A stretch of 64,000 bases of DNA from positions 99,014,001 through 99,078,000 of the forward strand of contig NC_092347.1 in assembly GCF_963676685.1 (NCBI RefSeq), written 5' to 3'. Shown one piece after another: positions 1,670-62,108 of the stretch (positions within the stretch are counted from its first letter, which is position 1; each line of letters begins with the position of its first letter). Both the position numbers and the translations under genes were made by a program. The notes below the pieces were generated by a model. That model saw nothing but the letters and a program-made list of their open reading frames with translations, was not told the DNA's origin and did no database searches. The stretch comes from Mytilus edulis (Eukaryota).

Positions 1670-3302
1670 TTAATATCCTGTAACATAAAAAACATTCTTA
1701 TAAATTTGAAAAGAGAAAAAACTTTCATAATATACAAATGTTATAGATTTTTAGCACTACTTTGTTTCCTTTTTTGTTACTTCATATCTTAATTATTTCG
1801 GTATAGACTATAATTGAATACGTAAATAAAATTTTTGCTTAAAATTTACATTATGTTGAAAATATAGATTTGCTGTACCTGAAAATTTACCTACTGTAAT
1901 CGTTGATTTGAATTATATATATAGTCGTCATGTTTATGGTAAATAATATGTCTATCTCAAAAACATAATAATACAAACAAGTTTGTATGAAATCTGGAAC
2001 GATAATTATGCCGTATCATACAGATATATTCAGAGTTAGATCAATTCTTCATTAAAAAATAAAGTGAACAGTTTTGTATATTTCCCCATTCTGAGCTATA
2101 CGAGAGATGCTGATAATATTTAATCTGAGGTATACTGGAAACCTACCTCTAAGACTCAATCCTGAATTAGATCTCCATCCTGAATTAGATCTCCATCCTA
2201 AATTAGATCTCCTTCCTGAATCAATTCCCCATCTGTCAAAACGTCCTAATCCACTGTCCAAATGACTGCTTCTGTATGGATCATATGTAGCTGCTCTTTT
2301 GTGTCCTAAAGAAGTTATTACTATTGTTATTTATATTCAGCAATAGCACAAGTATAAGTTCAGATGATACGATATGTTGGTGCTTTAAGAATACATGTAA
2401 ATATATAGTATGTAGGCCACACATTGCAACTCATCCTATAATAATATATACCAAAATTGTTTTGCATTTCAATCAAAGTAAATTTGGAATAGAGAAACAA
2501 CGATAGTAACGTGACGTCCACAAAACTGTCAACTTTTCGAAATGAGTTATTTGGATATGTGAGATATGTTTTATTGATTAAAAACACGATAAGAGTATAT
2601 ATGCACTATTATCAAATTTGTTCTAAACATGCAAAAAATAAGTGAATAAAACAAAACATCAGTTATTTGATTGTTACTGTTCTGTAGAATTAAAGCTTGG
2701 ATGCAATATCAGAAACATTTATCGTTTGGTGGTCGGTTCAAATCGGGGTTTCTGTGATTCAATTTGGTTCAAGATGAAATTTGTGGACATTTATTGTTAA
2801 AAAGAATATAAACACAGAACGGATTTTTTTTTAACTAGATCAGAAATAAACTTAGGCAAAAATCTGTCAAAAAGGTGCAATTTGGGTAGCCTAATATTCT
2901 GTAAAAATGAACACTTTTTTGTAAGAAATACTTAATATAATACAATCTCATTATAATGCTTTTGTTGGTGAAAATGCGTCATTTGAAAAATATGAATGTA
3001 GATTATATTGTAAATATGAAACCGTTATGGCAGTTTATAAAGAATAACAATGGATATATGTTAATCTGTATCTATAACAATTTATAAAGTTTATATAACT
3101 TACTTCGATATCCGCCATTTAATCCCCCTGACAGACGTCCACCATTCCAACCACTATTCCATCCATTACTAAGCTGTCTACTATTCCATCTACTTCCCAA
3201 AACTCTGGATCCCTGTGAACCCCATGATCGTTGAGTATAACTGTTAGCAGTGGCTAAAGTAACCAGTACAGCAAGCATAACAACAAAATCTAAGGTATTC
3301 AT
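1670..3302 (-). CDS. Secreted Gly/Trp/Asn/Arg-rich prepropeptide, copy A (121 aa)
   Basis: Coding exons 3302-3104, 2305-2147 and 1677-1670, all GT-AG phase-1 introns, 366 nt in total. Non-coding exon 1 ends at 3877 (GTAAGT donor). TATAAAA at 3971-3965; AATAAA at 1595-1590. Protein: MNTLDFVVMLAVLVTLATA-NSYTQRSWGSQGSRVLGSRWNSRQLSNGWNSGWNGGRLSGGLNGGY-RRHKR-AATYDPYRSSHLDSGLGRFDRWGIDSGRRSNLGWRSNSGWRSNSGLSLRGY*. Confidence 0.9.
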
Positions 3303-3964
3303 GGTTTCTGAAAAAAAAAGAATAAAATGTATCAAAATTATTATATCAGATGTTTTTTTATTACAACTACAACATATGTATTTACGCTACAACAGGGAAA
3401 ATTGTGATCTTTTAAAAATCAAAATACAAATGAAAAAGTTGTTTTTCTATTAATATGATACAACAAAACACGTTTGTCTAATTATTCGAAAAGGAACATA
3501 CAAATTAGTTTACACATTTATCATTTTCTCTCTTCCTACGACTCTTCACGATTAAAATTGATCATAAGTTATAATGATACATGTATGACTTACGAGTATG
3601 TTTACTATTAAGTTTGTTTTTTTTTGTGTGAAAAGAGTCGTTGTATCGTTATGAGACTATGAGAGAGAAAACACTATAAAAAACGATACGCCAGACAATA
3701 CCTTTGTAATGCATTTAAAATTTGAAATATGTATCTGCACAGTTATGACATTTATTTATTTGAAACACCAGTAAGCGATGATTATGTTGTCTATATAAAA
3801 ATGATGATATGATTTAAAAAGCTGAAATGATGAAAATTTCAAACATTGATATAAACAGCTAAAGCAAATTACTTACCTGTTTTATTCTATTTTATTTTTT
3901 TTCCCTTGAAAGTGTTTGTCGATTGAGACCTGATATGATAATGAACACTGAGATTGCATTCCGC

Positions 3965-4100
3965 TTTTATACTATTTATTTTAAGGAAATAATTCTAAAT
4001 GGGGAATTTTTTAAAACCCATACTACACAAGTAAACTACGTAGGTTTACAAACAATTAGATGTTGTAAAGGTTACCATAATGAACAACATGTCAATGTCA
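3965..4100 (-). promoter_or_regulatory. Proximal promoter of copy A
   Basis: TATA at 3965-3971, CTACGTAG at 4036-4043 and TGACATTGACA at 4090-4100 (minus strand). The same motif order occurs in copies B, C and D. Confidence 0.7.
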
Positions 4101-5640
4101 TTGGCTAGATGTTAAGTCTGTAATGATAAGTTTATGGGCACATCTGTTATACGTATTACATATCAATCATTATGCATTCAGTTTTATAATTATAGTAAAG
4201 TATAAATAGTTCAAACAGTTTGGTTAGAAATCGTATTAAATGATAAAGAACATTTTCTAAAATATAGATATATTCTTGTATGCCTTTTTTTATACTATCT
4301 CACATTTCTATAGTTCATGAACAAAATAATAAAAGAAATGCGTTTTTAAAGCCCTCGTAACACTTTTTGCAAATGAGATAGCTTTAAGTTTGGCGATTTA
4401 AAAAAAATATCCATTTTTTTTTGATAAAATTAATTAAATTCTAACGAGATTGGAAAATCATATTTTTTATCATACATTCTATATGTGACTAAATCAATAT
4501 ATGAGCTGGTACTTTAGTTATTATTTATTATATTTAGGTTGTATTTATTGTTTTGCAAATTAAGCATGCCATTAATTTTTCTAATTTATATTGATTCAAT
4601 TGTTATGTTGACAAATTTTACGAAAGCTTCCTTCTCGGGATGGAATTTTCCCATTGTTGAAGGTCATGTTCGTTTTCTCGTTTAACGTGTTTTACATTGT
4701 CATATCGGGGCCTTTGATAGCTAACTATGCGGTATAGGCTTTGCTCATTGTTGAAGACCGTACGGTGACCTATAGTTGTTAATGTCTGTGTCATATTGGT
4801 CTCTTGTGGACAGTTGTCTCATTGGCAATCATACCACATCTTCTTCTTCATAAGTTACGTTATTTAGTTTCTTATAAGTTGTCTCATTTGCAATAATACC
4901 ACATAATTATATCTCTATATCAAAAATGGTAGTTCGCATACTTAATTCGCTACGGTAAATTGTTCAACATGTTTTTCAACATAAAAATGATAGCATACGC
5001 TGTTAAGTTCATTATTATATGATACCATACGGCATTGTTTTTAAATAGCGATCAAAACAAATAAAAGTACCAACGGACCTGGCTTCCCCTGACTCATATT
5101 TATACTAAAACCTCTATTTCAATTTAGAAATTAACATTTACCTCTACCTTAACAGCAGTCATACAATTTTCCTTACCTTCACAACTTCCTCTGCTAATCT
5201 GATTTACGTTTATTAACTCACTATTCAATAGCATGTAGCTGCTACCTAGACCTAATAAAACCTCAAAAAAAATAATCTAAGTAAGTTTATCGGAAGACAC
5301 TAATACACTGTTGACAAATATTATGTATCCACTTAATAAATAGTACATGATGGTTTTGAACAAAAGATTATAGATACTGATTGTGTTTATCATCTTAATA
5401 ATATGTTATAGTGTTCTTTTTTTATTCGTCTATGTATAATATTAACCTTTTTTGATTGATTCATCATTTTGGTAATTTTCTTTTTGCCTGTCTCGGTATC
5501 CATGCATCGTGTCATTGTGTTTATGGTCTATGGTTAGAAAAATACAGTATTGTATTTTGAGCTCCGAAGGCATTAATTATTGATTTGATGATCATAAATT
5601 TAGTTTACTGGCCATTCGTCTTCGCTGTTATCTGGTTTGA

Positions 5641-9897: not shown

Positions 9898-11133
9898 TTA
9901 AAGGAATAAATAATATAAAAGACTTTTGATGAAGTCACGGTCACGTGCAAAAATGTTTATAAGGTAATAGGGAGAAAAACCTTCAGCCACCAAGAAGCTG
10001 TGTTATATCCAACTGTCATACTAATGCGACTGTTATACATAGAAGTGAGAGGTTTAGCTAGCTATAAAACCAGGTTCAATCCACAATTTTCTACATTAGA
10101 AAATGTCTGTACCAAGTCAGGAATCTGACAGTTGTTAACCATTCGTTTGATGTGTTTGGACTTCCTTTTTGAATTTCCCTCGGATCGAGTTCAGTATTTT
10201 TGTTATTTTACTTTTTACATCCAAACTATATTATGATTGATTTCTTTAAGTATATTTTGGGCGAGTGATAATATCAGGTGAGGTGACAACTATATGTCAG
10301 GTAAAGTGATTTTTGTAGAAGTTGTCGACCTTTAAACCGCTGATAAATATCAAAGGATGGTATACAAAGTTGAAAGTATTGATATTTAACATGACTGATA
10401 CTTAACACACATCCAATTCGAGGAACAGTTGAAAAAGACTCAATGACAAACGTCCACTAAACGCATTAATTATTAAGCTCATCAGAAAATGTTTATTTAA
10501 TGTAAACAATTTTGATATTTGTTTTAGTTCACATATTTTTGTAAATATATTGGTATTTTAATGCAACTGTCATACAAAAAAAAAGGTTTAGCCTTCTTTA
10601 TAACCAGGTTTAATCTAATATGTTCCATATATGTCGGGAATTTTACCAGTTTTTGGTGGGTTTCGTGTTGCTTATTCTTTAGATATATGTTTTTTACATG
10701 TGTACTATAGTTTGCCTGTTTGTCTTTTTCATTTTTAGCAATGGCGTCGTCAGTTAATTTTCGATTTACGAGTTTGACTGTCCCGCTGGTATCTTTCGTC
10801 CCTCTTTTAAAGCTGTTTTTTCATTCGTTTTATGTGTTGGAGCTTTCGATGTCGTCATAAGCACACAACAATTTAAATAACAACTAATAAGTGTTTCTGT
10901 TCCTTAGGTAGGTTTAGACTGGCATGTCATGTTCAGAAGAATATATATATAATTTAGTTAAATTAGTTAATCAAAACTCGTGTATTTAGTAACAAATGAA
11001 TATGTGGTACTATGAAAAATAAGAAAAAGGTGCATAATAGGTACATTAATTTTATTGGAAAAAGTAAAAAATCTACGGATTATTGATGTCACTTTATGTT
11101 GTTGAACACTGCTTGTGTCTTTCTATTTTTTTC

Positions 11134-13633
11134 TTAATATCCTGTAAAATAAAATATATTATTGTAAACTTGTAAAGAAAAGAAACTTTTGTAATACATA
11201 AAATGTTATTAATTTTACCCAATACTTGTTTTCTATTTTGTTACTTAATATCTCTATTATTTCGGTATCAACTATAATATATAGAATACGTCAATAAAAT
11301 ATAAAAAGATGTGGTATAATTGCAAATGAGACATCTCTCCACAAAATGACACTGAAATTACCAACTATAGGTCACCGTACGGCTAAACGTATTGATTTTG
11401 TCGCAAATATAAATATTGCTGTACTTAAACATTTACCTACTCTTACCGTTGATCTGATCCTCATCATTTTAATAGTAAATAAGATTTATATCTCAAACAA
11501 CATAATAATAAATCCCAATGAGCTTGAAAGCTCAAATGATACAAATGACTTATCGTACAGACATACTCAGAGCTAGATTCTTCTCTCAATTTAAATATTA
11601 AGTGCATAGTTTTGTATTTGTCCCATTATAATATACATGATTTATGAGAGCTGCTGATAATATTTAATCTGATGTATAATGGAAACCTACCTCTGTGACT
11701 CAATCCTGAGTTAGATCTCCATCCCGAATTAGATCTCCATCCTAAATTAGATCTCCTTCCTGAATTAAGTCCCCATCTGTCAGAACGTCCAAATCCACTG
11801 TCAAAATGGCTGCTTCTGTATGGATCATATGTAGCTGCTCTTTTGTGTCCTAAAGAAGTTATTACTATTGTTATATCTAATCAGCATTAGTACAAGTATT
11901 AGTTCAGATGATACGATATGTTGGTGCTTTAAAAATACATGTAAATATATAGTATGTAGACCTATCATTGCACCTCATCCTATAATAATATGTATCAAAA
12001 TTATTTTGCATTTGAATTAAAGTAAATTTGGAATAAAGAAACAACGATAGTAACGTGACGTCCACAAAAAGTCAACTTTGAAAAATGAGTAATTTAGATA
12101 TGTTACATGCATATTTTAATTAAAAAGACAATAATAGTAAATATGGACTATTGTCAAATTTGTTCTAAACATGCAAAATATAAGGTAAATAAAACAAAAC
12201 ATCAGGTATTTGATATTTACTGTTCTGCAAAAGTAAAGCTTGGATACAATTTGCGAAGTACTATTTACAGACACATTTATCGTTTGGAGTTCGGTTCAAA
12301 TCGGGTTTTCTATTACTCAATATGGTTCAAGATGAAATGTGTGGACATTTATTGTTAAAAAGAATATATCTTTAAAATAAACACAGAATGGATAATTTTT
12401 TTTTAACTATATCACAAATAAAAAGTAAAATCACAAAAATACTGAACTTAGAGGAAAATCTAATGGGAAATAAAGGCAACAGTAGTATACCGCTGTTCAA
12501 AACTCATAAATCCATGGACAAAAAACAAAATCGGGATAACAAACTAAAACCGAGGGAAACGCATTAAATATAAGAGGAGAACAACGACATAACACTAAAA
12601 TGTAACACATATAGACAAAATCCCACGAGAATAACAAATATAACATATATATATAACATCAAAACCAAATACATGAATTTGGGATAGACAAGTACCGTGA
12701 CACGTCTTATCGCAATGTGAATTTACACTCAAAAATAAGAGAAAACAAACGACACAACGTTATAATGTAATACACACAGAAACGAACTATAATATAACAA
12801 TGACCATATTCCTGACTTGGTACAGGGCATTTTTAAAGGAAAAAATGGTGGGTTGAACCTGGTTTTGTGGCATGCCAAACCTCGCACTTTTATGGCCATG
12901 TGAAATATAACATCAAAATGACAACACAGGACTACAATATAAATAAATTGGAGAACACAATTGACAAAGAATCACACGAACAACAGCCAACAAAAGGCAA
13001 CAAGTTCAAAATTTTAATACGCCAGAAGTGTATTTTGTCCACACAAGACCTATGTGTGACGCACAGATACAAAAGTTTGAAAGCCGAAACGAGTACAAAG
13101 TTGAACAGCATCGAGGACCAAAAGATCAAAAAAAAGTCTATAATCACATGGCAAAATAAAATAACAGAAATAAAATAATCGAAGGCAAAAATCTGCCAAA
13201 AAGGTGCAATTTGGGTAACCTAATGTTCTATTAAAATGAACACTTTTCGAAATAAATACTTAATATAATACTATCTCATATTAATGCTTTTGTTGGTGAA
13301 AAAACGTCATTTGAAAACAAAAGAACGTAGATTATATATTGTAAATATGAAACCCTAATGGCAGATCATAAGGAATAACAATGGATATATGTGAATCTGT
13401 GTCTATAACAAATTATAAAGTTTATATAACTTACTTCGATATCCGCCATTTAATCCCCCTGACAGACGTCCACCATTCCAACCACTATTCCATCCATTAT
13501 TCAGCTGTCTACTATTCCATCTACTTCCTAAAACTCTGGATCCCTGTGAACCCCATGATCGTTGATTGTAACTGTTAGCAGTGACTAAAGTAACCAGCAC
13601 AGCAAACATAACAACAAAAGCTAAGGTATTCAT
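11134..13633 (-). CDS. Secreted Gly/Trp/Asn/Arg-rich prepropeptide, copy B (121 aa), close paralog of A
   Basis: Coding exons 13633-13435, 11849-11691 and 11141-11134. Exon 1 donor after 14215; TATA at 14290-14284. Protein: MNTLAFVVMFAVLVTLVTA-NSYNQRSWGSQGSRVLGSRWNSRQLNNGWNSGWNGGRLSGGLNGGY-RRHKR-AATYDPYRSSHFDSGFGRSDRWGLNSGRRSNLGWRSNSGWRSNSGLSHRGY*. Confidence 0.9.
12421..13165 (-). mobile_element. Penelope-like 3'/pLTR fragment nested in a common repeat, inserted in intron 2 of copy B
   Basis: Absent from the equivalent intron of copy A (~2845). 12470-13135 matches 23400-23527 plus 24150-24690. Contains a decayed hammerhead at 13021-13062. Confidence 0.75.
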
Positions 13634-14283
13634 GGTTTCTGAAAAAAAGAATAAATTGTATCAAAACTATTATATCAAATGTATTTTGTTTAAAACTACA
13701 ACATATGTATTTATGCTACAACAGGGAAAATTGTGATCTTTTACAAATCAAAATACAAATGAAAAAGTTGCTTCTCTAATAATATGATACAACAAAAAAC
13801 GTTTGTATAACTTTTCGAAAATGTACATTCAAATTAGTGTACACATTTATCATTTTCTCTCCTGTATGTTTCTGCGACTCAAAACATCTTACAATCAAAA
13901 TTGATCGTAAGTTATAATGATAAATGTTTGATTGACGAGTATTTTTACTATCAAGGTTTTTTTTGTGTGAAAAGAGCTATTGTATCGTTAAAAGACAATG
14001 AGAGAGAAAACAGTATAAAAATGATACATCAAAACAATGCTTTTATAATGCATTTAAAATCTAAAATATTTGTCTACAAAGTTATAACATTTATTTAATT
14101 GAAAAACTAGTAAGCCAGTATTATTTCGTTTATATAAAAATGATGATATGATTGAAAAAGCTGAAATGATGAAAATTTATAAATTGATATAAAAAAATAA
14201 AGTAAATAACTTACCTTTTTTTTTTTGATAGTATTTGACGAACTAGACCAGCTGTGATAGAATACACTGAGATAGCAATCCGC

Positions 14284-14419
14284 TTTTATACTATTTTTTG
14301 TCAGGAAATACTTCTAAATGGGGAATTTTTTAAAACCCATACCACACAAGTAAACTACGTAGGTTTATAAACAATTAAATGTTGTAAAGGTTACAACTTT
14401 GACTAAGATGTCAATGTTA
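14284..14419 (-). promoter_or_regulatory. Proximal promoter of copy B
   Basis: TATA at 14284-14290, CTACGTAG at 14355-14362 and TGTCAATGTTA at 14409-14419. Confidence 0.7.
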
Positions 14420-15264: not shown

Positions 15265-15309
15265 GATTCTGATTAGGAAAATTACGGTAATTTAAATGTC
15301 CGATGTATA

Positions 15310-19777: not shown

Positions 19778-19909
19778 TGACATTGACATGTTGGTCATAA
19801 CCTTCACAACCTGTAATGGTGTAATAAAATAACCTACGTAGTGTATTTGTCTAATTTTAGGTTTTATTATTCCCCAATTTATATTTCCTTGTTACAAAAT
19901 AGTATAAAA
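19778..19909 (+). promoter_or_regulatory. Proximal promoter of copy C
   Basis: TGACATTGACA at 19778-19788, CTACGTAG at 19834-19841, TATAAAA at 19903-19909. Exon 1 donor GTAAGT at 19988. Confidence 0.7.
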
Positions 19910-20506
19910 AGGGAATGCTCTCAGAGCTCTCTATCCACTTGTGTCTTACAAGCCACTCAAGTACATCAAAGGCTAAAACAATAACATGTAAGTTGTACAT
20001 TGGTTTTGTTTCTTTCATATTTATCTGTATTGTATATGAATTTTAAAGCTCTTAAATCTGAATTAATATTGTATTTAATAGGAAGAAAACTTTCTGTTGT
20101 GTTTCAAATACATCTCCTGGATGACCAATAATGTTGTCATAGCACTGTGCATATAAAACAATTGGAGGCATTAAGCCAATAGGAACAACTGTTGTCAATA
20201 TGTCAATTTGGAAAAATACATAAAGCCTTTCATACTTAGTGTATATATCTCTTACTTGATTCATAAATGAACTTATTTTTCTCATAGACACTCATACCAC
20301 ATCTTCCTTTATCTATTATAATAGAAAACGCTTTAAAAAAGATTTTGCATTATTAAAGATATTAAAGCAGAAATGTACATCCTTTTGAAATAAATCGATA
20401 GCAAAGTAAACGCCTCACATTTATGAAATTCACGATCAAATTACGTTTCTTTATCATTGTGTATTTGGTATAATAACGCCGATGTATCTTTTAGTTTACA
20501 GAAATC

Positions 20507-22122
20507 ATGAATACATTAGCAATAGTTGTCGGGCTTGCTGTGTTGGTTACTTTAGCCAGTGCTCGCAGTTATAGTTCCAATCGAGGATCATGGGATGGTC
20601 TGAATAATGGTTGGAATAATGGACGTCTGAGTAATAGTTGGAATAGTGGACGTTTGACCGGAGGCTGGAATAGTGGACATCTGGGAGGTGGATTGATTGG
20701 CGGACACAGAAGTAAGATCTTACAAACATTAAGTCTCATTACCAAACATACTTGAGAAATATCGTTAGGTTTTACTTGAATTAACTATTGTTAGGGTTGG
20801 ACAGTTCAATGTTGTTTACTACTTAACAAATGAGGCATGTCATTGTACACTCGTATGATGATCTACTCCAAAAGTGTAGCTTTTTTAACGTTAGGCACCT
20901 TACAATCAATCAATCAATCAACCATTTTTCATTTCTTTTTAATGTACGTCGAATTTGTTTTTCCTAAACATTGTAAATGTAAATAAGTTAACATTTCAAG
21001 ATTCATATACAATAAGATTAAAAGACACTGTTCTTTTTTAACTTTTGTTTTCATAGCATCAATAAACTGTAATATTATGCACGGAGATATGGAATGATAA
21101 TATACCAAATATTATAATAATTCTTAAATTTATAGGATACAGAAGAGCAGCTGTTGGGTATAGATCAGTTGATCCATACAGTCATCTAAACAGTGGATTT
21201 GGACGTTTGAACACATGGGGAATTAATTCAGGAAGGAGATCTAATTTAGGGTGGAGATCTGGTTCAAGATGGAGTCAGCTAGGTAGGTTCCGGTTATTAT
21301 CTAATTAAATGTAACCCGCATTTCTAATCTCTTATTATGTTAAATATGGATAAAAATGCAACCTTTTTTTGATTTCTTATTAAGACATAGATGTTACACC
21401 GAGTTTATAAATATAATAAGGAAACGTTGCAATATTTTAATTTTTTCAACTCTCATTAACATTGAACAAGTTAAAGGTCGATTGGCATTTATTTTAATAT
21501 AATATTCCCTAGTGAAGTGTAAGAAAACCTATCCAAATTTCTAAAAAAAAATCAGAGCAAAATACCGAAATCCAAGGTAAATTAAAAAAAGGGGAGGTAC
21601 ATAAAAACTGACAACTTGTGACGTTATCCAACAAAGGAACAAGTAAAAAAGAAATCAGCTGTCATATTCCTATGGGGCAGGATATGTCTAACCTACCAAG
21701 GTCTCTGATATTTCCACTAAATTATGATTGGATTGTTTTGCCCAGTTTTTGGTTTTCTAATTTATATATTACGTTCTGTTTTCGACTAATGAGTTTTGGT
21801 ATCTTATAGATATCTTTTATCCTTTCTTTTTCCTGACTTGTTACAGGCATTTGGCAAATAAAACTTGGTTACATACACTGAATTACACATGAAAAATAAA
21901 AGAAACTAACAAGCACATGATACGATAATATTACTTTTTCGTACTGGTTAAATATAAAATAAGGTTTTAATTTTGAGATAGAAAACAACCCAGTAATAAA
22001 CCGATTTTTTCTTACGTGGCCTCTAAGAGTTTATATCATTAATTTCATGCGTACATTATAAAATAAAACAATCAGTTTATCTTCGAATTTACAAAAAGTA
22101 CTTTTATTTTACAGGATATTGA
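20507..22122 (+). CDS. Secreted Gly/Trp/Asn/Arg-rich prepropeptide, copy C (119 aa)
   Basis: Coding exons 20507-20711, 21136-21282 and 22115-22122, 360 nt in total; AATAAA at 22200-22205. Protein: MNTLAIVVGLAVLVTLASA-RSYSSNRGSWDGLNNGWNNGRLSNSWNSGRLTGGWNSGHLGGGLIGGH-RRYRR-AAVGYRSVDPYSHLNSGFGRLNTWGINSGRRSNLGWRSGSRWSQLGY*. Confidence 0.9.
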
Positions 22123-22999
22123 GTAAAGAGGAGGATATAAGGAGGACATTACAACTTCTGAACATGACATTAATAATCCGTAGATTTTATACTTTTAAAA
22201 ATAAAACTATAAATATAATATGCATTTGTACATTTTTTTATAATGCTGAAAATGCATTTGAAACTAAATAACAAGATATTGTTGGTGTGAGCTGTTGGTC
22301 ATGTTTATACATATAAATACGAAAAAACACACACAAACAATCACTCAAAATTATTCATATTTTCTAGAATAACCTTAAACAAACACAATCATAACATAAT
22401 GAGAGACAAGAATGCATAACTGTCTGAACACTTGAGGAGCTTTGTATGGGAGGTATGGGCTTTGCTCATTTTCGAAGGCCGTACGGTGTCCTATAGGTGG
22501 TAATTTCTGTGTCATTTGTTTTATTGTGGAGAGTTGTCTCATTGGCAATCATACTATATCTTCTATTTTATATTTGTGATAAAAATGGCCTTAAATGAAT
22601 AACCAAACTTTTTTTTTTGGAATTTCGGACCTCTGTTTTTATATTAATTTATCAATTGAGAATTGATTTACAAAAGTAGGTTATCGACTATTTTTGTTTC
22701 GAAACCACGACTGCTGAACTGATGATACCATACCATCGTGGATTTACAATATAATAAAAGATTTGGTATTATTGCAATAAGGAAACTATCCATAAAATTC
22801 ATATGAAAAACGAAATTAACAAAAAAAACATAACTCCGATGAAATTCATAGTTGACTATGTTATTCAAAACCAAATATTTGTATCTATAACAGGCTTTAA
22901 TTGCTGGCAATTGACTATGTTATAGGTGTTTTATGAATACGTTGATACTTAGAAAGAAAATCTAAGATTATTTGTATGTCAATGATATAAACACAAACT

Positions 23000-26060: not shown

Positions 26061-28949
26061 CAGATGGACATAACCGTCATATTTCTGACTTGGTACAGAC
26101 ATTATCTTATGTCGAAAATGGTGGATTAAATCTGTGTTTAAAGCTAGCTAAACCTCTCATTTGTATGACAGTCGCATCAAATTCCATTATATTGACAACG
26201 ATGCCTTAACAAAACAAACAGACATAATAGGTGCAAATGTCAAAAATAGGGATACAGCAGTCAGCATTGTGTTAATATCTTAATCATTATTAAAACAAAC
26301 ATGAAGGATTGAAATTACTTGGACCAAATCCTTACCCTGATAGGCACATGTTTATGTTAACATACACTCTGATGTTAAATCACGCGTTTGATGTACATCA
26401 GTAGATCAGAATGTAAACGTCACACAGGTAAAGATATAAAGTATTTTTTTCGTTTTAAATATGAACAAAAAATAGTCTATAGTTCTTTTATGCATATCCT
26501 CTGTAGAAACTAAATAAGAAGTCCCCCTTGTCCTTCTTGTCTTAGTAAATATGAAAGACAAGAATAAAATTTATCATAGAACAATTACACAATGGCGGGA
26601 TGTTAAAGTACAGAGTCACTTCATATGTATCAAAGAAACACAAATAGACACACGGACAAACACATTACCTTACAAGAAAGATACAACAAAAATTATAGAA
26701 TGATAACACAATGACAGGATTCATAAGTACCGAGCCACGTCAAATGGATAACACAAAAACAAACCAAACAGTAAAAGTAATATTGATAAAAGAGTTGTTA
26801 TCAATTGCATAATTTTTATTTTTAAGTACTCGGGGACAGGACAATAATTTTCGCGTTGATAAAGACTCTCTATATAATATAGCAGTGATCGCCTCAGGGA
26901 AGAAACTTGAAATTGATAGTTAATAGATAGTAAATACATTTTATTTATAGTATATCGTAATGTATGTTCAAAGTAGACATACACGCAAAAAATAATGGAA
27001 TTTAACAGAAAACGGACATTGGAAAAAAGGGGAGAGGGCGTACAAAAATTGTCCTGTCTTGAAGCACCTATGAATCTTAATAACACCAAATCGCGAAAAA
27101 TATGGTTTAATTAACTTTTGAAAACTAATTATTCACTTCGGCCATTGGTCTCATTGAAAATCAGTTTTTTTCTAAAATCAATAAAACCACATATTTACCG
27201 CACCAAAAGACAATAGTTGTATATTATTATAAAACCAGTTGTTGGCATGATGCGGGGTATGTTTTTCTCATACATTTTATGATGCCTAATCTTTTTTGGG
27301 AGGGATTGTTCTTGAATTTCATATGACGAAGATATAATCTTTTAATCAATTTAATTGAGGTCTAGAGCTGGCATTTCATTAACTGCTAATAGTCCTTTGT
27401 TATAAATTTATGTATCATTGTAATTTTGTTACCTACTCTGCCATCGGGCTCGGAGTTTTTTTAACTGAGTTTTACTGTGTGTATGTTATGTGTTTCTTTA
27501 TTCTACATTGACTAGAGGTATAGGGGAGGGTTGAAATCTCACAAAACATGTTAAACCCGTACACATGAAACGAAAGGATAACAACTGTTATATCTATAAG
27601 GATAATATGTAGAGTTTTCCCCACATGTAATATGCTTTTTTTCAATTGGGAAACTCAGCATCTAGCCTCATTTGTAAGAAATAATAAATCTAGTTGTCTA
27701 ACATAAATATAGGATATATTACAGTTTAGTTAACACAAACGCTTAGTATCTATACAAAAAATATGTCTTTTTGAACAAATGAATTTTAACTTCATTACAT
27801 TCCAATAGTACAAATGCTTATTTTTTGACGTCGTAAATTAACAAAATACATTTTTCTTATTTTTTATGAATGATTGTCGCTTGAACGAAACACTGAGAAC
27901 GATAAATAAGTAAAAATATTCTCACATAAGATAAGGAACACTCCAGTTTATAATAAGTATAAAACTAAAAATATCAAAAGAACACATAATTTTTTCTTTT
28001 AAAAACGCCAATTTTTTTAATAGATTTTCTGTGAAACTATTTACCTAGATTATATGCCTTTATCTACCTAATGTTACTGCCATACATATTATTTTTTGTG
28101 GGTTTTGTATTAGATTCTAACTTTAGAATTTAATTGTAGTTTATTTAATGAATGGCTATTATTTATGTTGAATTCATTGAACCATAAACTAAATTTTTGA
28201 CTCTTCACATTGAATAATCCGCAATGAGGATTATGTAAAATGTGAAGATTCAAAAATTAATTTCACGGTTCATTAATGCAAAATGAATTATTAGCTTACA
28301 GAACTTTTTATATTATTTATATTAACAATAACAACGTACACACATGTTGGCGTATAAATACACAACGTCAGAGTGGGTGTACGTGTTGCCATATAAATTG
28401 ACAACATTGAAAATAAAAGTAATAATTTTAACCACTCAGAAGACGGTAAATACACCAAATTTATTTATAATCTTTTTTTCTGAATTCTGATTTAATACAT
28501 AGATCTAACACCGAGTATATAAATAAATTAGAGGAACTTTGCCATTTTGGTTTTTCAAGTTAACAGTTTTAATTATGAAACATCTCGTTACCCTTTTTAC
28601 AAGTTAAAAGGTCAAATAAATGTCATTCAATTGAATATAATAAACCAAAGTGAAATATAAGAAAAGATATCCAAAATAAAAAATAAAATAAAGCAAAATA
28701 CCAAAATTGCAGCGGGATTTATCGTTTTAATGGTACCAAACCTTCTCCCTTTTTTGAAACAGTAGTATAACATCACAACATAGAAGGACACACTATACAA
28801 TATCAATTGGAAAGCTTAACTGAATCAAAAAAAGTAGTAACATACATTAACAGACAATGAACGAATAAATTTGATCTGTGATACAATGCAAATACATAGT
28901 TAATAAAGAATAAGGGATGAATAATTAAGGTAAAGAGTAAAACAGGGTT

Positions 28950-29180
28950 TAAACTAAGGTAAAAGTATAACACTGCTGTGAAATCTTAAATATTTTTTGA
29001 AAAAACATCAACTTTGAAGACATAATTGGTCATATTATACACAGGTAAATGAAAATAATACTTTCTCTTCTGTGAATATAATCTTCCGTTTAGGAATACC
29101 AAGACATTTTATGTATATCTATAAAACTTATCTAAAACTTGGTACATATGTGGTGAATAACAACAATAAAACTATACAAT
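28950..29180 (+). repeat. ~230-bp segment duplicated near-identically at 31976-32205
   Basis: AAACTAAGGT..CTGCTGTGAAATCTTAAA..AATAAAACTATACAAT is present at both sites. Confidence 0.85.
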
Positions 29181-29302
29181 CAGTTACGAAAAGATTTTTT
29201 CTAATGTAGTTTATGAAAGCTTAAAACCAAACTTATGATAATATGAAGAAACTGTAGACCTCATAGAAAAGAATCAGTGGTTGCATTTATTTTATGTGTA
29301 CA

Positions 29303-29695
29303 TTATAAACAGATATATCATGTTAAGGAGGGGTATTTGCAAAAAATACCAGTCGTGAGAATGTTAAATTTCGCGAGCCGTAAGGCGAGTGAAATTCATT
29401 CTAAAGACGGGTATTTTTTGCAAATACCCATCAAGAACATGCTATATCTGTTTAATTACACCGAATGTTAACTTTCAAAACGCATTGATGATCATGACGT
29501 TACAAGCGTCCAGTCGAATAGAGAATGTTTTGGCAAATACCACGGCAGAGAGGGTAAAAAAATGCATATCCTTTTGGATATACCCCGGCGGCGTTAAAAA
29601 ATGAACGATATTCATTTGATAACAGTAAATTAGTGAAAAATACACTGGCTATCAATCAATCAAAACCCAGGATTCTTACATAAGGTGTAATTATA
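29303..29695. mobile_element. Foldback non-autonomous DNA element (possibly Crypton-like)
   Basis: ~150-bp hairpin centred on GAGCCGTAAGGCGAG, plus a TAATTACACC / GGTGTAATTA inverted pair. Confidence 0.55.
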
Positions 29696-32600
29696 AAAAA
29701 ACAGCCGTCTTTCTCTTTGAATTAACTGGAATAACTTTTATTTTACAGGATATTAAGAAGAGACGAGGACACAATCAGTACATTACAACATCTGAACTTG
29801 ACTGCACTCATCCGTTGATTTTTTAATTTTTCATATAAAATTGTAGATATGATATGCAGTACTTTATATTTTTATTAATGCTGTAAATGGATTTTAAACG
29901 TTACAACAAGATATTGGTATGAACTATTGATCGTGGTTACATACAATCTGACGAAGAAGACACACAACGGCAGTAAAACAAAATTAGAAAAAAACACATA
30001 ATATAAATTTACAAAACACTTTTTTTAGAAGTGCCCTCAACTTTTACAATCAAAAATGAGAGCCAAGAATAAATAAACTATTGAAGAGCTTTATGATCAA
30101 AAAGCCAATTACCAAACATTATTTGAGGCATTTCGGACCTCAGGTTTTCTATAAAGTTATCAAAAAGCAAAATCACTTCGAGGAAAATACAAAAAGTCAA
30201 GTCTTTACTTCCTACAGGGATTATCTTGTGTAGAAAATGGTGGATTGAACCTTGCGTTTTAAATTATTATCCTGGTACCTTTGATAACTAATTAAGAATA
30301 ATTTTTAACAAAACGAATTTGACAAACAAAACCAAATCACTGAACGACAGGCTCCCGACTTAAGACAAGCTTACAGAATGTGCCTTGGCTAAACATGTAT
30401 ATGTCCTTATATAACATGGAAAAGTGGTATAACAACCCAATATCAGAACAAACATCAATTTGAAACTTGCTACAATATAAAAAAAGAAAATGTGGGATAA
30501 TTGCCCTAAAGACAACTCACCACAAGAGACAATCTAATTTTTTGAAGGCACTTATAACATTCTCCTTTTCTTGTTTTGTTTATTTTCGGCCTTTTTCAAT
30601 GTTTATTAGGGTATTGTCAGTTCAGTTTCAATTCGTGTTTACACTTAAAAAACATAAACAACTTTATATTTCATATGACTATTTTGTTGATAAATTGTGA
30701 TGTTTTGTTTTTATTTTCATTTATTGATACATTTAACATATCCTTTTATTAAATTTTGTTGATTTTTTTAAAAGTTTATTTTGAGTAATCGGTATTTATT
30801 CTGCAGTCGTTAAATTGATTTACAAGATTATATTAAACATTAACCTGTAACTAATTGTGTTAATCATTTTGTTTTGTCACTGAAGGGACTATAAATATTA
30901 AATCAAATATGTAGCAACTTTACCAGACCATAAAGGAAAATAGGTATTTAGTCGGATCTTAACACGTACTTGTGATTTGGTTAAAACCGGTTTTGTTCAA
31001 AATATACGAAGAAATGTCGAAATGTTCAGGACTTAATTAAATCCGTATTTCGGTAGGATGGTGCAAGTATACGATTTTTATTGCGTCTTACATTTTGAGA
31101 AGCGAATAATCTTCAACTACTTTATTCAAATATTGTGTAAAAACGTTAATTTTTAGCTATGAAAGTCAAGTGGCTCGAGTATTTTTCTGAGGAAGTTTTA
31201 AAAAATTGCAAAGAAATATTTTTACATTGGGTTAGCTTTAAAATTTCATTAGTCTTAACTATCTATAGATTAACAACTTTTGGTTATATTTATAATTTAG
31301 AATCATCATTAAAGGTGGGGGACGATTTCGCAGATAATTAATTATATTGATGTGCCATTTGTATGCAAGAGTGACATTTCGTTGTATTATGTGCCAATTC
31401 GAAAAAGTTATGCGAGTATTCTCTCCCCTTAACAGGTTCATTATTTTATAATTAAGTTTAGGTTTCTGATATAATTTTGAATAATTACAAAATGTATCAA
31501 TTCAATATATTTCAGTTTTTGTTATTGGTGTATCAAAAACATTGATGTACGAATATAATTTCATAAATTTGAAATGTTTAAAATGATTACATACCAATAT
31601 AAAGAACCGTTCATCATTTTTGAAAAAGACTATGAACGAAAATCGATTTATTTATCTTCCCTTGGTGACAGATTGATTGGGAAATGAACCAGCGTAATAT
31701 AATGGTAATCACAAAGAGGGACCAGCAAGCAATTTTTAATTGTAGCTTATTCAACGTTAAAACAATTTTCCAATATAAACGAATGCTACTTTATACAAAT
31801 ATAAGGACTTTGTTAGCTAAATCTACAAATTTTATTAGATATTTTGATTTTTTATTGCAATAGATTAATATGCTAAAATATGTTATTACTACTCCAAATG
31901 TACAAGGTATATAAATAATATTGATTGATTGATTGTTGGTTGCTTAACGTCCAGTGGCAAATATATATAAATAATAAACTAAGGTTAAAGTATAAAACTG
32001 CTGTGAAATCTTAAACATTTTTTAAAAAAACATCAACTTTGAAGAAATAATTCGTCATATTATACACAGGTAAATGAAAATAATACTTCGTCTTCTGTGA
32101 GTATAATCTTCCGTTTAGGAATACCAAGACATTTTATGTATATCAATAAAACTTATCTAAAACTTGGTACATATGTGGTGAATAACAACAATAAAACTAT
32201 ACAATTGGTGCTCAATAAAACTTCGTGTTCTCCGTGTACAGGTGCCGGAACAGTATTTTAGAAGACATCATTTTTCCCGTTCACCTATTATAATAGGTCT
32301 GTAGGTCAATATCAGATTGATATCAAAACACACAAAAAACAAATTATATCTCTCAAGGTATAAAGTTTTGTATTACTTTCAAAAATGCATAGCTGATGGA
32401 GTAAATATTAAAACAGTTAATGTTTATAACAAATTTTAATGAGCTATTTATATAGGAAAACGTATGTAATTTTAATCATATATCTAATGATTATATTAAA
32501 ATTTTATAATTAAATAGTTTATGGTCGAATATAAACCTTTGATACACTTTTAAACCTTCTTCTTCAAAATACCTTTAATGTGACAAAAAGCAAATAAGAT

Positions 32601-56782: not shown

Positions 56783-56849
56783 GGGCACTTGTTAATTTGC
56801 TGTCGACAAGAAAGCAGGTGTTACGCAAATTAGTTATCCGAACCCGCCC

Positions 56850-58770
56850 AACCTCCCTATGAGAATAGTTGCTGCTGTTTTTGTTTTATATTTTCAGGCA
56901 CGGGTTTGCTGTATTTGATTTCAATATTACGGTTACCAGTATAAAAGTCGGACCTTCATAGTATTGGACCCAAAAGAAAGACGGAGCTGGCCGGAGAAGA
57001 CCTGCCAAGAAAACAAAAAAGGTCGGACATGTGGTGGCAGAAGTACCTGGGGAAACTACTGATATCTCATCAGGTAATGAGTCGGAGGAGGATGCACGGG
57101 CATTAAGGTACAAAATTGCAAATAATTCCATTGATTTCACTCCGTCACAAGAATCTAGCGTTCATGACACAATGGGGGAACACGTGTCTTTTAAAATTAA
57201 AGAAAAGATTTGGGAGGGAAAGTTTGAAGAACTTCATTCTCTTTTGAGAACGCAAAAAGAAATGGAAGAGGTTGACGAGGGCGATTTGAAATTAAAAAGG
57301 GGGAAAATTTGCATCGAAAAAAGATCGTCGGGGGTTTATTTGTCATTAAATGAATCGACTTCAGCATTCATGATTTTTATGAGCGTATACATTAAGAAAT
57401 ACAGTACACGGGCACAGGAATTGTTAAAATATATGCGCGATATAAGATTAGTGGAAACAAGGTCAGAAAACTGGGCCATCTGTGACGAGCAATTTAGGCT
57501 AAAAATAGAAAAGAATCCAAATTTATCTTGGGGAAATATACACGGTGAATATTGGCTATTACACATCACATCTCCCACCGTACATAACAGTGGGTCAGTG
57601 CAATCACAGGGTTATAGAACAAATACACAAAATCGTGGTAATTATAACTCAAATGCAGCTACACTTTCAAACAATAGAAAACATCAACAATCATAGGTAA
57701 CTATTGGAAGTGTAAATATGTCATGTAAATACTATAATAATGGTAATGACTGTCCCTACTTCCCTCGTTGTAGGTTTAAACACATTTGTGAAATATGCAG
57801 TGGCAAACACAGAAAGGCCCAATGTAATAACCGGGCCCAAGGAAGAAGTAACAAAAAGTATTAATTTTTATTCATTAGGAAATACTCCTATAAAAATGTA
57901 TCAGTCTTGGAAAATTATTTAGAATTCTACCCACTTAACAATGTAGCACATGAAATTATATCTGGTTTCAAATACGGTTTTTCACTAAAATATTTTGGCT
58001 TTAGGGAACCAAGGGAGAGTTTCAATTTAAAAAAAGTGCATTACAGCTACCCAAAAGTTTTTAAAAACAAATTAATGAAGGAAGTTAAACTTGGTCGCAT
58101 TGCTGGTCCTTTCAGATACCCACCTTTTCCCACACTTCAGGTATCATCAATGGGGCTAGTGCCAAAAAGGATGGGGATGTCAGACTGATTCAACATTTAT
58201 CCTATCCTGAGAATAATTCAATAAACGATTTTATTGATAAAGATCATTGTTCAGTGCAGTACAGTTCAGTGGACGAAGCATCATGTTTGATTAATAGACA
58301 CAAAACATTTGCACGATTGAGCCAGTGTGACGTAAAAGCGGCTTTTCGTTTGTTGCCAACTGCCCCGGACGATTTTGACTTGTTGGGGATAAAATTTCAG
58401 GGTGAATATTATCTTAATAAAATGCTCCCTATGGGGGCCTCAATAAGTTGTGCCCTGTGGGAGAAATTTGCAAAAGCTTTGCATTGGATAATACAGCTAA
58501 ATAGCGGAAATGATGATATCCTCCATTATTGAGATGATTTTCTTTTTGTCGAGTCGAGCTAAACATCAAAAGTTGGCAATACTTTGAAGTTATTCCAAGA
58601 AGTATGCAACAAAATAGGCATTCCTCTTGCTAGTGACAAGACTACTTTGCCGACTACATTACTTATGTTTTGGGGTATAGAATTTGATACACAGAATTTA
58701 ATCATGCGACTTCCAAATGAAAAACTTGTCAAACTCTCACAAAAAATCAGAGATACCTTGGACAGATTTA
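56850..58770 (+). mobile_element. Decayed DIRS-order (tyrosine recombinase; DIRS/Ngaro-like) retrotransposon: gag and RT
   Basis: gag-like ORF 57031-57696 continues past a TAG into a Cys/His finger CKYYNNGNDC..CRFKHICEICSGKHRKAQC. Pol fragments EVKLGRIAGPF, DVKAAFRLLP, LPMGASISC, Y*DDFLF (TGA at 58530) and GIPLASDKT. Truncated by another repeat at ~58770. Confidence 0.85.
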
Positions 58771-60433
58771 ACATTGCCATAAAGGTGAGAGGTATGGCTA
58801 GCCACAAAACCAGGTTTAACCCATCATTTATTTCTTAAAATGTCCTGTACCAAGTCTGATAAATTGCAGTTGTTATCTTATAGTTCGTTTATGTGTGTGT
58901 TTCATTGTCGTTTGGTTTTTTGTCTCACTTTAGTGTTTCTGTTGCTTCGTTGTTTTCGTCTTATCATGCTCATCGTTGATGTGTTTCCCGTGGTTTTGGT
59001 TTGTAACCCAGATTTGTTTTCTCTCAATCGATTTATGACTTTCGAACAGCGGTATACTTCTGTTGCCTTTTATTTAACATCATAGTACCTCAAAAGACAA
59101 CAGTAAGGTTGCAGCATAAGCATACGTGATTAATGCTTTAAAAAAAAGCTTTCATAGTTATACATGTAGCATGGCTAGCAATGATCATAAATTTAAACCT
59201 TTGGCATATACAAGTTACTTATTTTCTATTCGTCACATTCAAGAAATTATGAGGAAAGAGTTACAAAAAGTATACCAAAGGTATATATTTGACCATAAAC
59301 TATCTCATCATATAATACAAATGTAATCATTAAGCATATAATTACGATTGCATACGTTTTTTATATAAATATCTGGATAGAATCTAATATAAAACATAAA
59401 CTATAGCATATTTTACTGCACCAGCCATTTTGGAAATTAAATGTGGTTTATTGACTGAGTGTTACAATTTCGTTTAAACTCTTGAATTCAAAAAGATTGG
59501 AAAAGTTAGGATAGATAATAAATAGAAGATCATCATGATATATCTGAAAGTATAATTAAATGATCTGATTGTTGTATACTTTTGTTTTCGAAATGTGACT
59601 GAAAGAACTCCGACTCAGTTTGAAATGTTTAGTATGGAGAAGTCGGCAACGGGATGCGCACAGTTTGTTTATTCATTCGTTTGTTGTGTTGAGCATGTGA
59701 TTTTGCCGTTTGATAAGGGACTTTCTTTTTTAAATTTTCCTCTGAGTTAAGTATTTTTGTGATTTTACTTTTTCTCATATGAATGTTGACAATTTGTTGT
59801 AAATTCGACCTCCAAATTAAACTTATAAGTTGCTATACGAAAGTCCAGCAAAAAATCACCACTTGTTCCTCGATGTAGCATGTTTTACCTTTTTGTTCAG
59901 TATTAACCAGATATGCAGAATGGTATCCAAAAGTAATAAAGTCATTTGTTCTTGTGTTTGTTTGTTACATATTTGTCTGGTTTTTTTTAAAGTGATAAAG
60001 ATCATAACAGAACGTTGACCTATGTACCCTTTTTTTTTACATTTTTACCTGTTATATCTGTTTGTTTTGTTCAAATATCGTATTCAAAATGATGGAAATT
60101 TATGCGATTATCGTATAAGTAAGAGGATTATTTTCAAAAAGCATAGGAAAACCTTCATATATGACTAGGTTTAAGAAAATGTTATCCAAGGATATCTTAG
60201 CTGATGATCCACCTTACGTGTCTATGCTTGTTCTTTTTGTAAGAATATGTATAACCACGATCAAACGTTCATATTAATATCCTGTTATAAAATGTCAAAT
60301 GCATTTTCAGCATTATGAAAAAATTAGCTAATGCATATCATATTAACAGTTTTATTTAAAAAAGTAAAAAATCTACGGATGATTGTTGTCAAGTCATGAT
60401 ATTGTAATGTACTCCTTGTGTCTTCGTATTTTC

Positions 60434-62108
60434 TTAATATCCTGTAAAATAAAAGAAATTCAAGTTAAAATTATTTGTTTTTCTCATAATGTACAGATGA
60501 AATAAATACATCAACTGAATATTTTCTATATGATCTGCAGTTATTTCAAATCTTCATTATTTGTGTATGAACTAGAAGACACTACGTAGAAAAAATTCAG
60601 TTACTTTTTGTTCTTCTAAAATTTTTAAATTACTAAATTTTAAATCGAGACTTTATAGCCCTATATTAACACAACCTAATTTTATATTGACCAGTACGAT
60701 AAACTAGTGTTATCATATTATTCGCTTTTCCTATTTTTTATTTGTAATTTGAAATAAATTGAATTAAAGTGTATTGTATTTGTAAAATATTTGTACCAAG
60801 TTAAGAAGAGGTAAAGGATACCATAAGGACGTTCAATCTTTTACATTGAAACAGTACTTAATATACAAAATAGCAAACTTAACACTTGGTTATACCATTA
60901 AAAACTTAGGTAAATGTCAGATGCCAAGGAGCAGTTAGGCAGATATTGCTCCATGGGAATATCCCAGTTGGTTTCTTTTTTCACTCAATCTAATGTAAGG
61001 TCACTTTTGTTGGCGTCATGTACTTGCCCTTTTTGAATTTACCTTGAATGTTTTGTAAATTGCTATATTTTTTGTATTTCATAATATTTTAGTGGGGTAA
61101 GTTATATTCAAACTATTGAAATTTATATCGACCTTTAACTTGTTATAAGTTAATAATGTAGCAAAAGTTAAAATGTGTTAGTTTAAAAGTATCAGAATGG
61201 CAAAGTTCCTTTCTTATATCTATATAGTCAGTGTTAGATCGAAATCAAATAAAAGACATTTGCACCAATATTTCCCATTTTAAGAGATCATAGATGTGGA
61301 TAACATTTCATAGCTATAGGATTAGAATTGAAGCTTACCATTCCATCTTGTATTAGATCTCCACCCTGAATAAGATCTCCTTCCTGAATTAATTCCCCAT
61401 GTGTTCAAACGTCCTAATCCACTGTCAAAATGACTGCTTCTGTATGAATCAACCGATGCTCGTCTGTATCCTATAAAATTAATAACTGTTATTATATTTG
61501 GTCTATTATCATTCAATACCTTCGTGAAAAATGTTACAGTAGGAAGCTTAAAGCTTTAAAAACACACGTTAAAACAAACAGTGTCTTTAAATCTTATTGG
61601 CTAGGAATATGTTCATGTCATATCTTTACATATACAATGTTTAGGAAAACAAATACGACTTACATTATATATATAGAAGTGAAAACACGTTGATTGATTG
61701 ATGGATTATTAATTGACTAACGTTCAGTGGCTACTCTTTCTGGAGGAGATATTTAAACGAATGTATATTACACAATGACATACATCATTTAAAAAATAGT
61801 AGCAAATTTTGAACTATGAATGACCAACTTTAACAGAATTAAAATGTTCAAATAAAAATAAGCGTTAATTATGTTTAAAAGATTTTACTTCTGTGTTCGC
61901 CAATCAATCCACCTCCTAAATGTCCGCTATTCCAGCTTCCTGTCAAATCACCACTATTCCATCGATTAGTTAGACGTCCACTATTCCAACCATTATTCAG
62001 ACCGTCCCATGATCCTTGATTGTAACTATCATAACTGCGGCGAGCACTGGCTAAAGAAACTAACACAGCAACATGAGCAAGCCCGATAACAATTGCAAAT
62101 GTGTTCAT
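60434..62108 (-). CDS. Secreted Gly/Trp/Asn/Arg-rich prepropeptide, copy D (119 aa), C-type
   Basis: Coding exons 62108-61889, 61470-61339 and 60441-60434, 360 nt in total. Exon 1 donor GTGAGT after 62624; TATA at 62710-62704. Protein: MNTFAIVIGLAHVAVLVSLASA-RRSYDSYNQGSWDGLNNGWNSGRLTNRWNSGDLTGSWNSGHLGGGLIGEH-RRYRR-ASVDSYRSSHFDSGLGRLNTWGINSGRRSYSGWRSNTRWNGY*. Confidence 0.88.

Follow-up and report, generated by a model that had tools for sequence, protein, structure and literature searches.

The secreted low-complexity peptides of mussels serve as models for wet adhesion, for coacervation and for antimicrobials that lack Cys. The mussel foot protein mfp-3, a product of the foot phenol gland that occurs in the byssal plaque, contains Tyr and 3,4-dihydroxyphenylalanine (DOPA) at ~20 mol%, the shell matrix precursor Pif, a large protein with VWA and chitin-binding domains, gives two matrix proteins on cleavage at a furin-like RMKR site, and the arthropod glycine-rich antimicrobial peptide armadillidin is linear, Cys-free, ~50 amino acids (aa) long and made of Gly-rich short repeats with an aromatic and a basic residue. 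Myticalins have the signal consensus MKGxxLLLLTIxxALCMIxECEG (PMC5577615) and are encoded by clustered genes of three exons and two introns, in which a hypervariable cationic peptide is followed by a dibasic site and an anionic extension, the second intron lying in phase 1 after the dibasic site (PMC5577615, PMC12294457). Here we examine a stretch of 64,000 nucleotides (nt) of the Mytilus edulis genome (contig NC_092347.1, positions 99,014,001 to 99,078,000; hereafter the window), which holds four genes, A to D, of a family that has features in common with each of these systems.

We establish that A to D are real protein-coding genes under purifying selection and that their products carry signal peptides, are predicted to be disordered and have a furin-type motif that is conserved, as is the exon junction at which it lies. 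The family is a genuine, genus-restricted, partly annotated but unstudied family of secreted peptide precursors, and its members are, as far as sequence can tell, Mytilus-restricted secretory pro-proteins of ~120 aa. A role as extracellular material or coating (byssus, periostracum, shell or mucus) is quite possible but short of probable, and we prefer it over an antimicrobial role with low confidence. What is new is a compact family of 13 genes with a conserved two-peptide layout, for which our searches gave no homologue outside Mytilus and of which RefSeq holds only some copies. If the products are byssal or periostracal components, they would offer an adhesion or cohesion chemistry derived from Arg/Trp and terminal Tyr rather than from dense DOPA; as host-defence peptides, they would form a glycine-rich class that is new in molluscs. 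With exact gene models, predicted cleavage products and conserved promoter blocks to hand, either reading can be put to a direct test.

Gene structure, selection and extent of the family

All feature coordinates are positions in the window unless positions on chromosomes C4, C5 or C7 are stated. The four loci were read directly as DNA and their spliced models translated; joined models were translated in local scripts, for counting, and searches used single exons, exon profiles or the databases' own full-length proteins as queries. Comparison of the window with itself revealed two paralogous pairs, 1474-4207 against 10942-14534 (79-85% identity) and 19674-21966 against 62941-60673 (70-79% identity, mutually inverted). 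All four genes have the same layout of four exons. Exon 1 is short and non-coding, and intron 1 stops 5 nt short of the ATG; the signal peptide, the N-terminal peptide (N-peptide) and the first Arg residue or residues of a multibasic site are encoded by exon 2; exon 3 encodes the remainder of this site and the C-terminal peptide (C-peptide); and exon 4 opens with an 8-nt coding micro-exon (xGA TAT stop), which specifies Gly-Tyr-stop and is followed by the 3' untranslated region (3'UTR). Introns are bordered by GT/AG throughout, and the two that separate coding exons are in phase 1. Each gene has a TATA box, AGTATAAAA[AG], ~90 nt upstream of the 5'UTR donor and an AATAAA signal 75-85 nt past the stop. 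Tandem Repeats Finder detected repeat units of 27 nt (9 aa) in C, within exon 2, and of 18 nt (SNSGWR) in A and B, within exon 3. The original prediction, made from the letters of the window, had described genes of four exons with phase-1 introns, TATA boxes and polyadenylation signals, and all four loci conform to it on direct reading and translation. Translation of A to D likewise confirmed what it had said of the proteins, namely a signal peptide, a multibasic site, a GY-stop end and no Cys, with an A/B N-peptide of 5 Arg, 4 Trp and no acidic residue (in 46 aa); and the proposed subtypes, A/B and C/D, differ in having RRHKR and RRYRR, respectively, as the multibasic site.

The spliced model of C is identical, residue for residue, to RefSeq XP_071166165.1 ("uncharacterized protein [Mytilus edulis]"), and that of S4, a copy just beyond the window, is an exact match to XP_071166167.1; the exon structure from the NCBI pipeline agrees with our models of both genes. 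No identical entry for A, B or D was found among the proteins retrieved, and their 90% clusters contain no M. edulis member except S4; these three genes therefore appear to be unannotated in the collection searched. The term "unrecognised", as used in the original prediction, was too strong because C and many orthologues are already RefSeq models under the name "uncharacterized protein". Ratios of non-synonymous to synonymous substitution (dN/dS), from Nei-Gojobori counts, were 0.14-0.30 among A-type copies, 0.38 for A against B, 0.44 for C/D and ~0.4-0.6 between subtypes, and the excess of synonymous changes had Fisher p values of 4e-5 (S1/S3), 2e-4 (A/S1) and 0.009 (C/D). The N-peptide has no excess of dN/dS over the signal peptide, and constraint is strongest in the C-peptide, with 0-1 non-synonymous against 6 synonymous changes among A-type copies. 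The gene models are beyond chance because the spliced C model equals a RefSeq protein and because synonymous changes outnumber non-synonymous ones. In the literature, neither the accessions and locus names of the family nor its sequence motifs and tryptic peptides led to any paper.

A genome-wide search with profiles of exons 2 and 3 gave matches solely on C4, the contig of the window, between 98.965 and 99.125 Mb (~160 kb), and this profile search found no member elsewhere in the M. edulis genome. The cluster lies ~1 Mb from the end of the chromosome-scale contig and comprises 13 genes: eight short, four long and one outlier. Six of the short genes belong to the RRHKR type (S1, S2, S3, A, B and S4) and two, C and D, to the RRYRR type; all eight are intact and share one structure. 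In the long genes, L1 to L4, the 9-residue unit is expanded to about ten copies of NDGxLTGR[W/L]; L4 corresponds to XP_071166170.1 (200 aa), and L3 (C4:99115198-99115437), where the exon-2 frame is broken with 80 aa open and tblastn gives two overlapping pieces, is probably a pseudogene. Older annotations (CAG2235769.1 and OPL33364.1) run through L3 into junk. The outlier, Z, is divergent, with a Tyr/Asn-rich N-peptide, and retains the RRYRR↓AA junction (the arrow marks the predicted cut). Exon 4 and 3'UTR DNA occurs nine times in the genome, always within the cluster.

Beyond M. edulis, homologues were found in M. galloprovincialis, M. trossulus, M. californianus and M. coruscus. A HMMER search of 1.84 billion representatives with the exon-2 profile retrieved Mytilus kin together with low-complexity chance matches (P0008, P0010-P0012), and three word-seeded protein searches, the last with an 11-sequence profile, returned Mytilus proteins only. 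All matched proteins are named as uncharacterized, hypothetical or, from their composition, "DDB_G0289901-like". No Pfam family matches the precursors, and the ESM Atlas gave only noise-level matches (Gly-rich cuticle and keratin clusters; scores 0.77-0.79). The original prediction of a lineage-specific family of secreted precursors is thus borne out, all matches being from Mytilus. A clustered family had been rightly seen, but it consists of 13 genes in three subtypes that reach past the window and not of four genes.

Predicted processing and possible roles

The products of A to D are ~55% Gly, Ser and Asn (Gly ~24%), with 11-16% Arg and ~7% Trp, and contain no Cys after the signal peptide. 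A signal peptide is readable in all members, with n-, h- and c-regions and A-x-A at -3/-1 (MNT[LF]A[IF]VV..AVLVTLA[ST]A). The isoelectric point (pI) of the N-peptide is 11.8 in A and B, 11.5 in C and 6.9 in D, its Arg content 5/46 in A/B and 4/48 (~8%) in C, and its net charge spans +4.8 to -0.1 across the four genes. The C-peptides have a pI of 10.8-11.4 and a net charge of +3.9 to +5.0, rising to +7.5 in the long type. In AlphaFold models of the short type, residues 3-24, the signal, form the sole confident helix and the rest has a confidence score (pLDDT) below 50, with a mean of 48. Models of the long type have a pattern of period 9, with 7-residue strands and 2-residue turns at a pLDDT of 55-63, which is a hint only.

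An alignment of 11 orthologues and paralogues from four Mytilus species has invariant columns at the signal core, the Trp of each repeat unit, R68, R69, R72, A73, A74, the block NSG[R/K]RSNLGW and the terminal GY. The three Arg and two Ala residues form a convertase motif with its P1'-P2' positions, RRx[K/R]R↓AA, which spans the junction of exons 2 and 3 and is invariant in five Mytilus species while the flanking residues vary; the multibasic site noted in the original prediction is conserved. A multibasic site occupies the same exon junction in the other subtypes, as YRSRR↓SA in the long type and as RRYRR↓AA in Z, and should be accessible since the region is predicted to be disordered. Of 79 Tyr residues, 71 are no more than 7 residues away from a predicted peptide end, compared to 23 expected, and the same holds for all five in A-type copies (p = 0.002, one sequence). 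No N-x-S/T sequon occurs in 21 family members, each with 8-22 Asn and 14-26 Ser and Thr, where shuffles expect ~42, an absence that is suggestive rather than a probability.

As read from the sequence, each pro-protein consists of a signal peptide (MNT, a hydrophobic core and A-x-A) and a body, predicted to be disordered, of 9-residue W-N-x-G-x-L-type units, and its C-terminal half is conserved. If the family supplies an extracellular material or coating, the pro-protein would enter the endoplasmic reticulum without N-glycosylation because no member has a sequon. A furin-type convertase would cut the multibasic site in the late secretory pathway, yielding two peptides of 42-51 aa with Tyr at or near the ends of each. 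These peptides may stick via Arg/Trp/Tyr contacts, their terminal Tyr may be oxidised or cross-linked, and the tandem amplification of near-identical copies may serve dosage. We lean to this role because the mature peptides are conserved and not diversified, varying no more than the signal peptide does, because the charge of the N-peptide is not conserved and there is no anionic pro-piece, because the subtypes differ in the number of repeat units, because the amplification of near-identical copies fits a need for dosage, because Tyr caps the predicted peptide ends, because a GWNNGWN-GR-type stretch is common to mfp-3 and because an apparently secreted Gly/Tyr-rich open reading frame (ORF) lies ~19 kb beyond Z. 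A more specific proposal is a second, DOPA-poor adhesive or coacervating system in Mytilus, independent of mfp-3, in which each gene would provide two Tyr-capped Arg/Trp "sticker-spacer" peptides, with the long-repeat subtype possibly a beta-hairpin stack, acting as a cation-pi glue, primer or coating in byssus or periostracum; in this precise form the proposal is distinctly unlikely.

Several observations weigh against a material role. No match to the family was found in the one byssus proteome supplement searched (from a byssogenesis paper), and none of the family clusters contains a Logan-derived spliced full-length protein; expression may therefore be weak or narrow, a weak sign that it is not high in commonly sequenced tissues. 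Tyr is scarce, with 4-5 residues per 95-99 mature residues (4-6%). The Tyr and sequon counts come from related, motif-constrained sequences, so the shuffle statistics overstate their significance, and we infer the cleavage into two peptides, the absence of N-glycans and the chemistry of terminal Tyr from sequence features. A pair of cationic Gly-rich peptides could also fit the look of a host-defence precursor, and the C1q-domain gene and the gene for an amidated-type Gly/Arg/Trp/Phe peptide nearby would equally suit an immune neighbourhood.

A host-defence role, in which a convertase would free linear, cationic, Gly-rich peptides directed at microbial membranes in the manner of armadillidin-like glycine-rich peptides or myticalins, with tandem copies giving dose and some diversity, is fairly unlikely. 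The order of signal, cationic peptide, basic site and conserved extension, together with an exon 1 that is 5'UTR only and a phase-1 intron where the site lies, is as in the myticalins; the N-peptides of A, B and C and all C-peptides have a high pI with Arg and Trp present; and the genes are clustered in tandem, one long copy being broken and one further copy a pseudogene remnant, with a C1q-domain ORF within the cluster and, adjoining it, a gene for a Gly/Arg/Trp/Phe peptide with an amidation-type end. However, the mature peptides are under purifying selection and not hypervariable, the N-peptide of D is neutral and each Arg-containing unit of the long-type repeats also has one Asp. An anionic pro-region is absent, the C-terminal part being cationic, and the Arg and Trp residues are diluted by ~55% Gly/Ser/Asn. 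Homology to myticalins is also lacking (hhalign, 1.7%), and the myticalin gene is on a different chromosome.

Two further explanations concern the basic motifs themselves. The precursors may be single-chain, disordered secreted proteins in which the basic motif is left uncleaved, as a charged patch or binding site. Cleavage is indeed deduced from the motif, and the flanking AA and the Tyr pattern might have other causes; this explanation is nevertheless improbable, as no subtype or species departs from R-x-[K/R]-R plus Ala, amid variable flanks, the site falls in predicted disorder and the Tyr residues cluster at exactly the ends that cleavage would make. Conversely, there may be more cuts than one: precursors of signalling peptides (hormone- or pheromone-like) would be cut at RRx[K/R]R and at SG[R/K]R, to give an amidated middle peptide ending in ...WGINS-NH2 and a tail peptide starting at SNLGW. 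The longest invariant block, NSG[R/K]RSNLGW, fits such processing, since its one change, R to K, keeps the dibasic site; the long type has GKR directly before the multibasic site, and the C-peptide is the part under strongest constraint. Signalling precursors are nonetheless very improbable here: thirteen tandem copies in one genus would be unusual for neuropeptides, the long type is without the GRR site, the peptides are long, of low complexity and built of repeats, and no known family was matched in Pfam or protein searches.

Feature coordinates, a remnant copy and neighbouring genes

Table 1. Positions of the family's coding sequences, exons, promoter features and remnant in the window
Feature	Coordinates	Strand	Details
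Gene A coding sequence	3302..3104, 2305..2147, 1677..1670	-	121 aa
Gene B coding sequence	13633..13435, 11849..11691, 11141..11134	-	121 aa
Gene C coding sequence	20507..20711, 21136..21282, 22115..22122	+	119 aa
Gene D coding sequence	62108..61889, 61470..61339, 60441..60434	-	119 aa
Gene A promoter and non-coding exon 1	3877..4100	-	TATA 3973-3964; exon 1 end 3877, then GTAAGT
Gene A promoter blocks	4100-4085; 4043-4035; 4006-3998	-	TGACATTGACATGTTG; CTACGTAGT; TTCCCCATT, in this order
Gene A exon 2	3104..3307	-	ATG 3302; signal peptide, 46-aa N-peptide, first Arg(s) of RRHKR; phase-1 donor
Gene A exon 3	2147..2305	-	Rest of RRHKR, 51-aa C-peptide; phase-1 donor
Gene A exon 4	1590..1677	-	GY-stop 1677-1670; 3'UTR with ATCCGTAGATTT block; AATAAA 1595-1590
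Gene B promoter and non-coding exon 1	14215..14362	-	CTACGTAGT 14362-14354; TATA 14292-14283; exon 1 end 14215
Gene B exon 2	13435..13638	-	ATG 13633
Gene B exon 3	11691..11849	-	
Gene B exon 4	11051..11141	-	GY-stop 11141-11134; AATAAA 11056-11051 in 3'UTR
Gene C promoter blocks and non-coding exon 1	19778..19987	+	TATA 19901-19910; exon 1 end 19987
Gene C exon 2	20502..20711	+	ATG 20507; 27-nt (9-aa) repeat 20598-20657
Gene C exon 3	21136..21282	+	
Gene C exon 4	22115..22205	+	GY-stop 22115-22122; AATAAA 22200-22205 in 3'UTR
Gene D promoter blocks and non-coding exon 1	62624..62834	-	TATA 62712-62703; exon 1 end 62624
Gene D exon 2	61889..62113	-	ATG 62108
Gene D exon 3	61339..61470	-	
Gene D exon 4	60351..60441	-	GY-stop 60441-60434; AATAAA 60356-60351 in 3'UTR
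Remnant copy	27745..29966	+	Upstream region, intron-3 pieces, GY-stop exon and 3'UTR retained; promoter and exons 1-3 deleted

The positions of the genes and of the remnant are collected in Table 1. Upstream of the genes, at 4100-3964, 14362-14283, 19778-19910 and 62834-62703, blocks recur at constant spacing: TGACATTGACATGTTG, the palindrome CTACGTAGT, TTCCCCA[AT]T and the TATA box. An exact TGACATTGACATGTTG lies upstream of A, C and D, and the upstream region of B has no exact match to it. The 3'UTRs of all eight short genes contain a ATCCGTAGATTT block immediately before the poly(A) signal. These promoter blocks and the ATCCGTAGATTT block are candidates for regulatory elements that the genes have in common. 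Intron 2 of gene B harbours, upstream of exon 3, an inserted dispersed repeat of ~0.67 kb (12462-13128), other copies of which lie in the window at 23392-23542, 24181-24690 and 58766-59075 (88-92% identity).

The fifth copy consists of segments at 27745-28123 (homologous to the upstream region of C/D), 28475-28707 and 29194-29306 (the intron-3 pieces) and 29690-29966, all on the plus strand, with its GY-stop exon at 29749-29756 and a 3'UTR that reaches 29966. Of the "remnants" in the original prediction this one is real, but tblastn found no second coding remnant of the family in the window. Two tandem arrays were also observed, one of ten 27-nt units at 1101-1380, overlapped on both strands by ORFs at 948-1394, and one of 2.6 copies of a 363-nt unit at 7266-8198.

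Between C and D is the C1q-domain ORF, of 122 aa (44950-45315, minus strand; Pfam E = 2.5e-6). Approximately 4 kb from Z is a gene (C4:98954001-98964000, segment positions 5558-5640 and 7659-7787, plus strand) that has a signal-peptide exon, MKLFAMCVILMVALASFSVSA..., and a terminal exon for a 42-aa Gly/Arg/Trp/Phe cationic peptide with YRG-stop, an amidation-type end; it looks like a precursor of the glycine-rich antimicrobial type. The ORF ~19 kb beyond Z (211 aa; C4:98944001-98954000, segment positions 2012-2647, plus strand) has a signal peptide and GGYGGYGIGGGYGG-type repeats, and its product looks like a secreted, Gly/Tyr-rich structural protein.

Comparison with described systems

A typical myticalin gene was located in the M. 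edulis genome, by a degenerate signal pattern, on C7 at 62.879 Mb (62,879,0xx, minus strand). Its exon 2 encodes MKGIVLILLTILVALYMINECEG, followed by an Arg-rich peptide, by KR and by an acidic start. Like the myticalins, the present family is Cys-free, Mytilus-restricted and tandemly clustered, with a 5'UTR-only exon 1, an intron 1 just before the ATG, a signal and first peptide on one exon and a basic convertase site with an adjoining phase-1 intron. The signal peptides are, however, unrelated (MKGxxLLLLTI...ECEG in myticalins and MNTLAIVVGLAVLVTLASA in the family), and hhalign assigned the family profile a probability of 1.7% against the genome's own myticalin exon. The family has four exons as opposed to three, its intron splits the basic site, and it has an additional phase-1 intron and the GY-stop micro-exon. 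Its C-terminal part is cationic (pI 10.8-11.4) where that of the myticalins is anionic, its mature peptides are conserved where theirs are hypervariable, and it resides on C4 (98.965-99.125 Mb) and not on C7. For the mature peptide, myticalins have a pI of >11 and >10% Arg; the A/B N-peptides have both, that of C has the pI only and that of D falls short, with a pI of 6.9. Membership among the myticalins was rejected on the grounds that signal, exon count, C-terminal charge and chromosome all differ.

The mfp-3 cluster was found by the pattern GWNNGW as five last exons on C5 at 15.98-16.08 Mb (L034-L038), which encode peptides of the YYGP...GWNNGW...KYW type from ...cag/TATTATGGTCCA straight to the stop; one copy (L037) ends early, after ...GWNNGWRRRG. 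Both families encode small, secreted, Cys-free products rich in Gly, Asn, Arg and Trp in numerous tandem variants. The GWNNGWN-GR stretch that they have in common is local, with a length of 11-24 residues, and of low complexity (BLASTP, 11/24 identities, E = 1e-4 in a single comparison), and hhalign aligned the two over 11 columns of a low-complexity stretch with a probability of 32%; the resemblance in composition and in one motif appears real but short. The family exon-2 profile did not retrieve mfp-3 from the 1.84 billion proteins. The mfp-3 genes are clustered separately, on C5 and not on C4, and place nearly all of the mature peptide, along with the stop, on one last exon without an internal basic site or micro-exon, whereas the family spreads its product over exons 2-4; the mfp-3 exons of this genome are, moreover, visibly Tyr-rich compared to 4-6% Tyr in the family. 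Membership in mfp-3 was rejected for its other chromosome, other gene layout and Tyr-rich composition. The original prediction had assigned the genes to neither myticalins nor mfp-3, and this is upheld on the features of sequence, layout and position that were tested.

Two other systems offer partial parallels. No similarity in sequence or domains connects the family, which has no Pfam domain, to Pif, and from armadillidin it is separated by phylum, by the absence of detectable homology, by a Gly content of ~24% that is diluted by Ser and Asn and by an N-peptide charge that is not conserved. With Pif it nevertheless shares the plan of a secreted bivalve precursor from which convertase cleavage is predicted to release two products, and with armadillidin the form of linear, Cys-free peptides of ~50 aa, built of Gly-rich short repeats with an aromatic and a basic residue.

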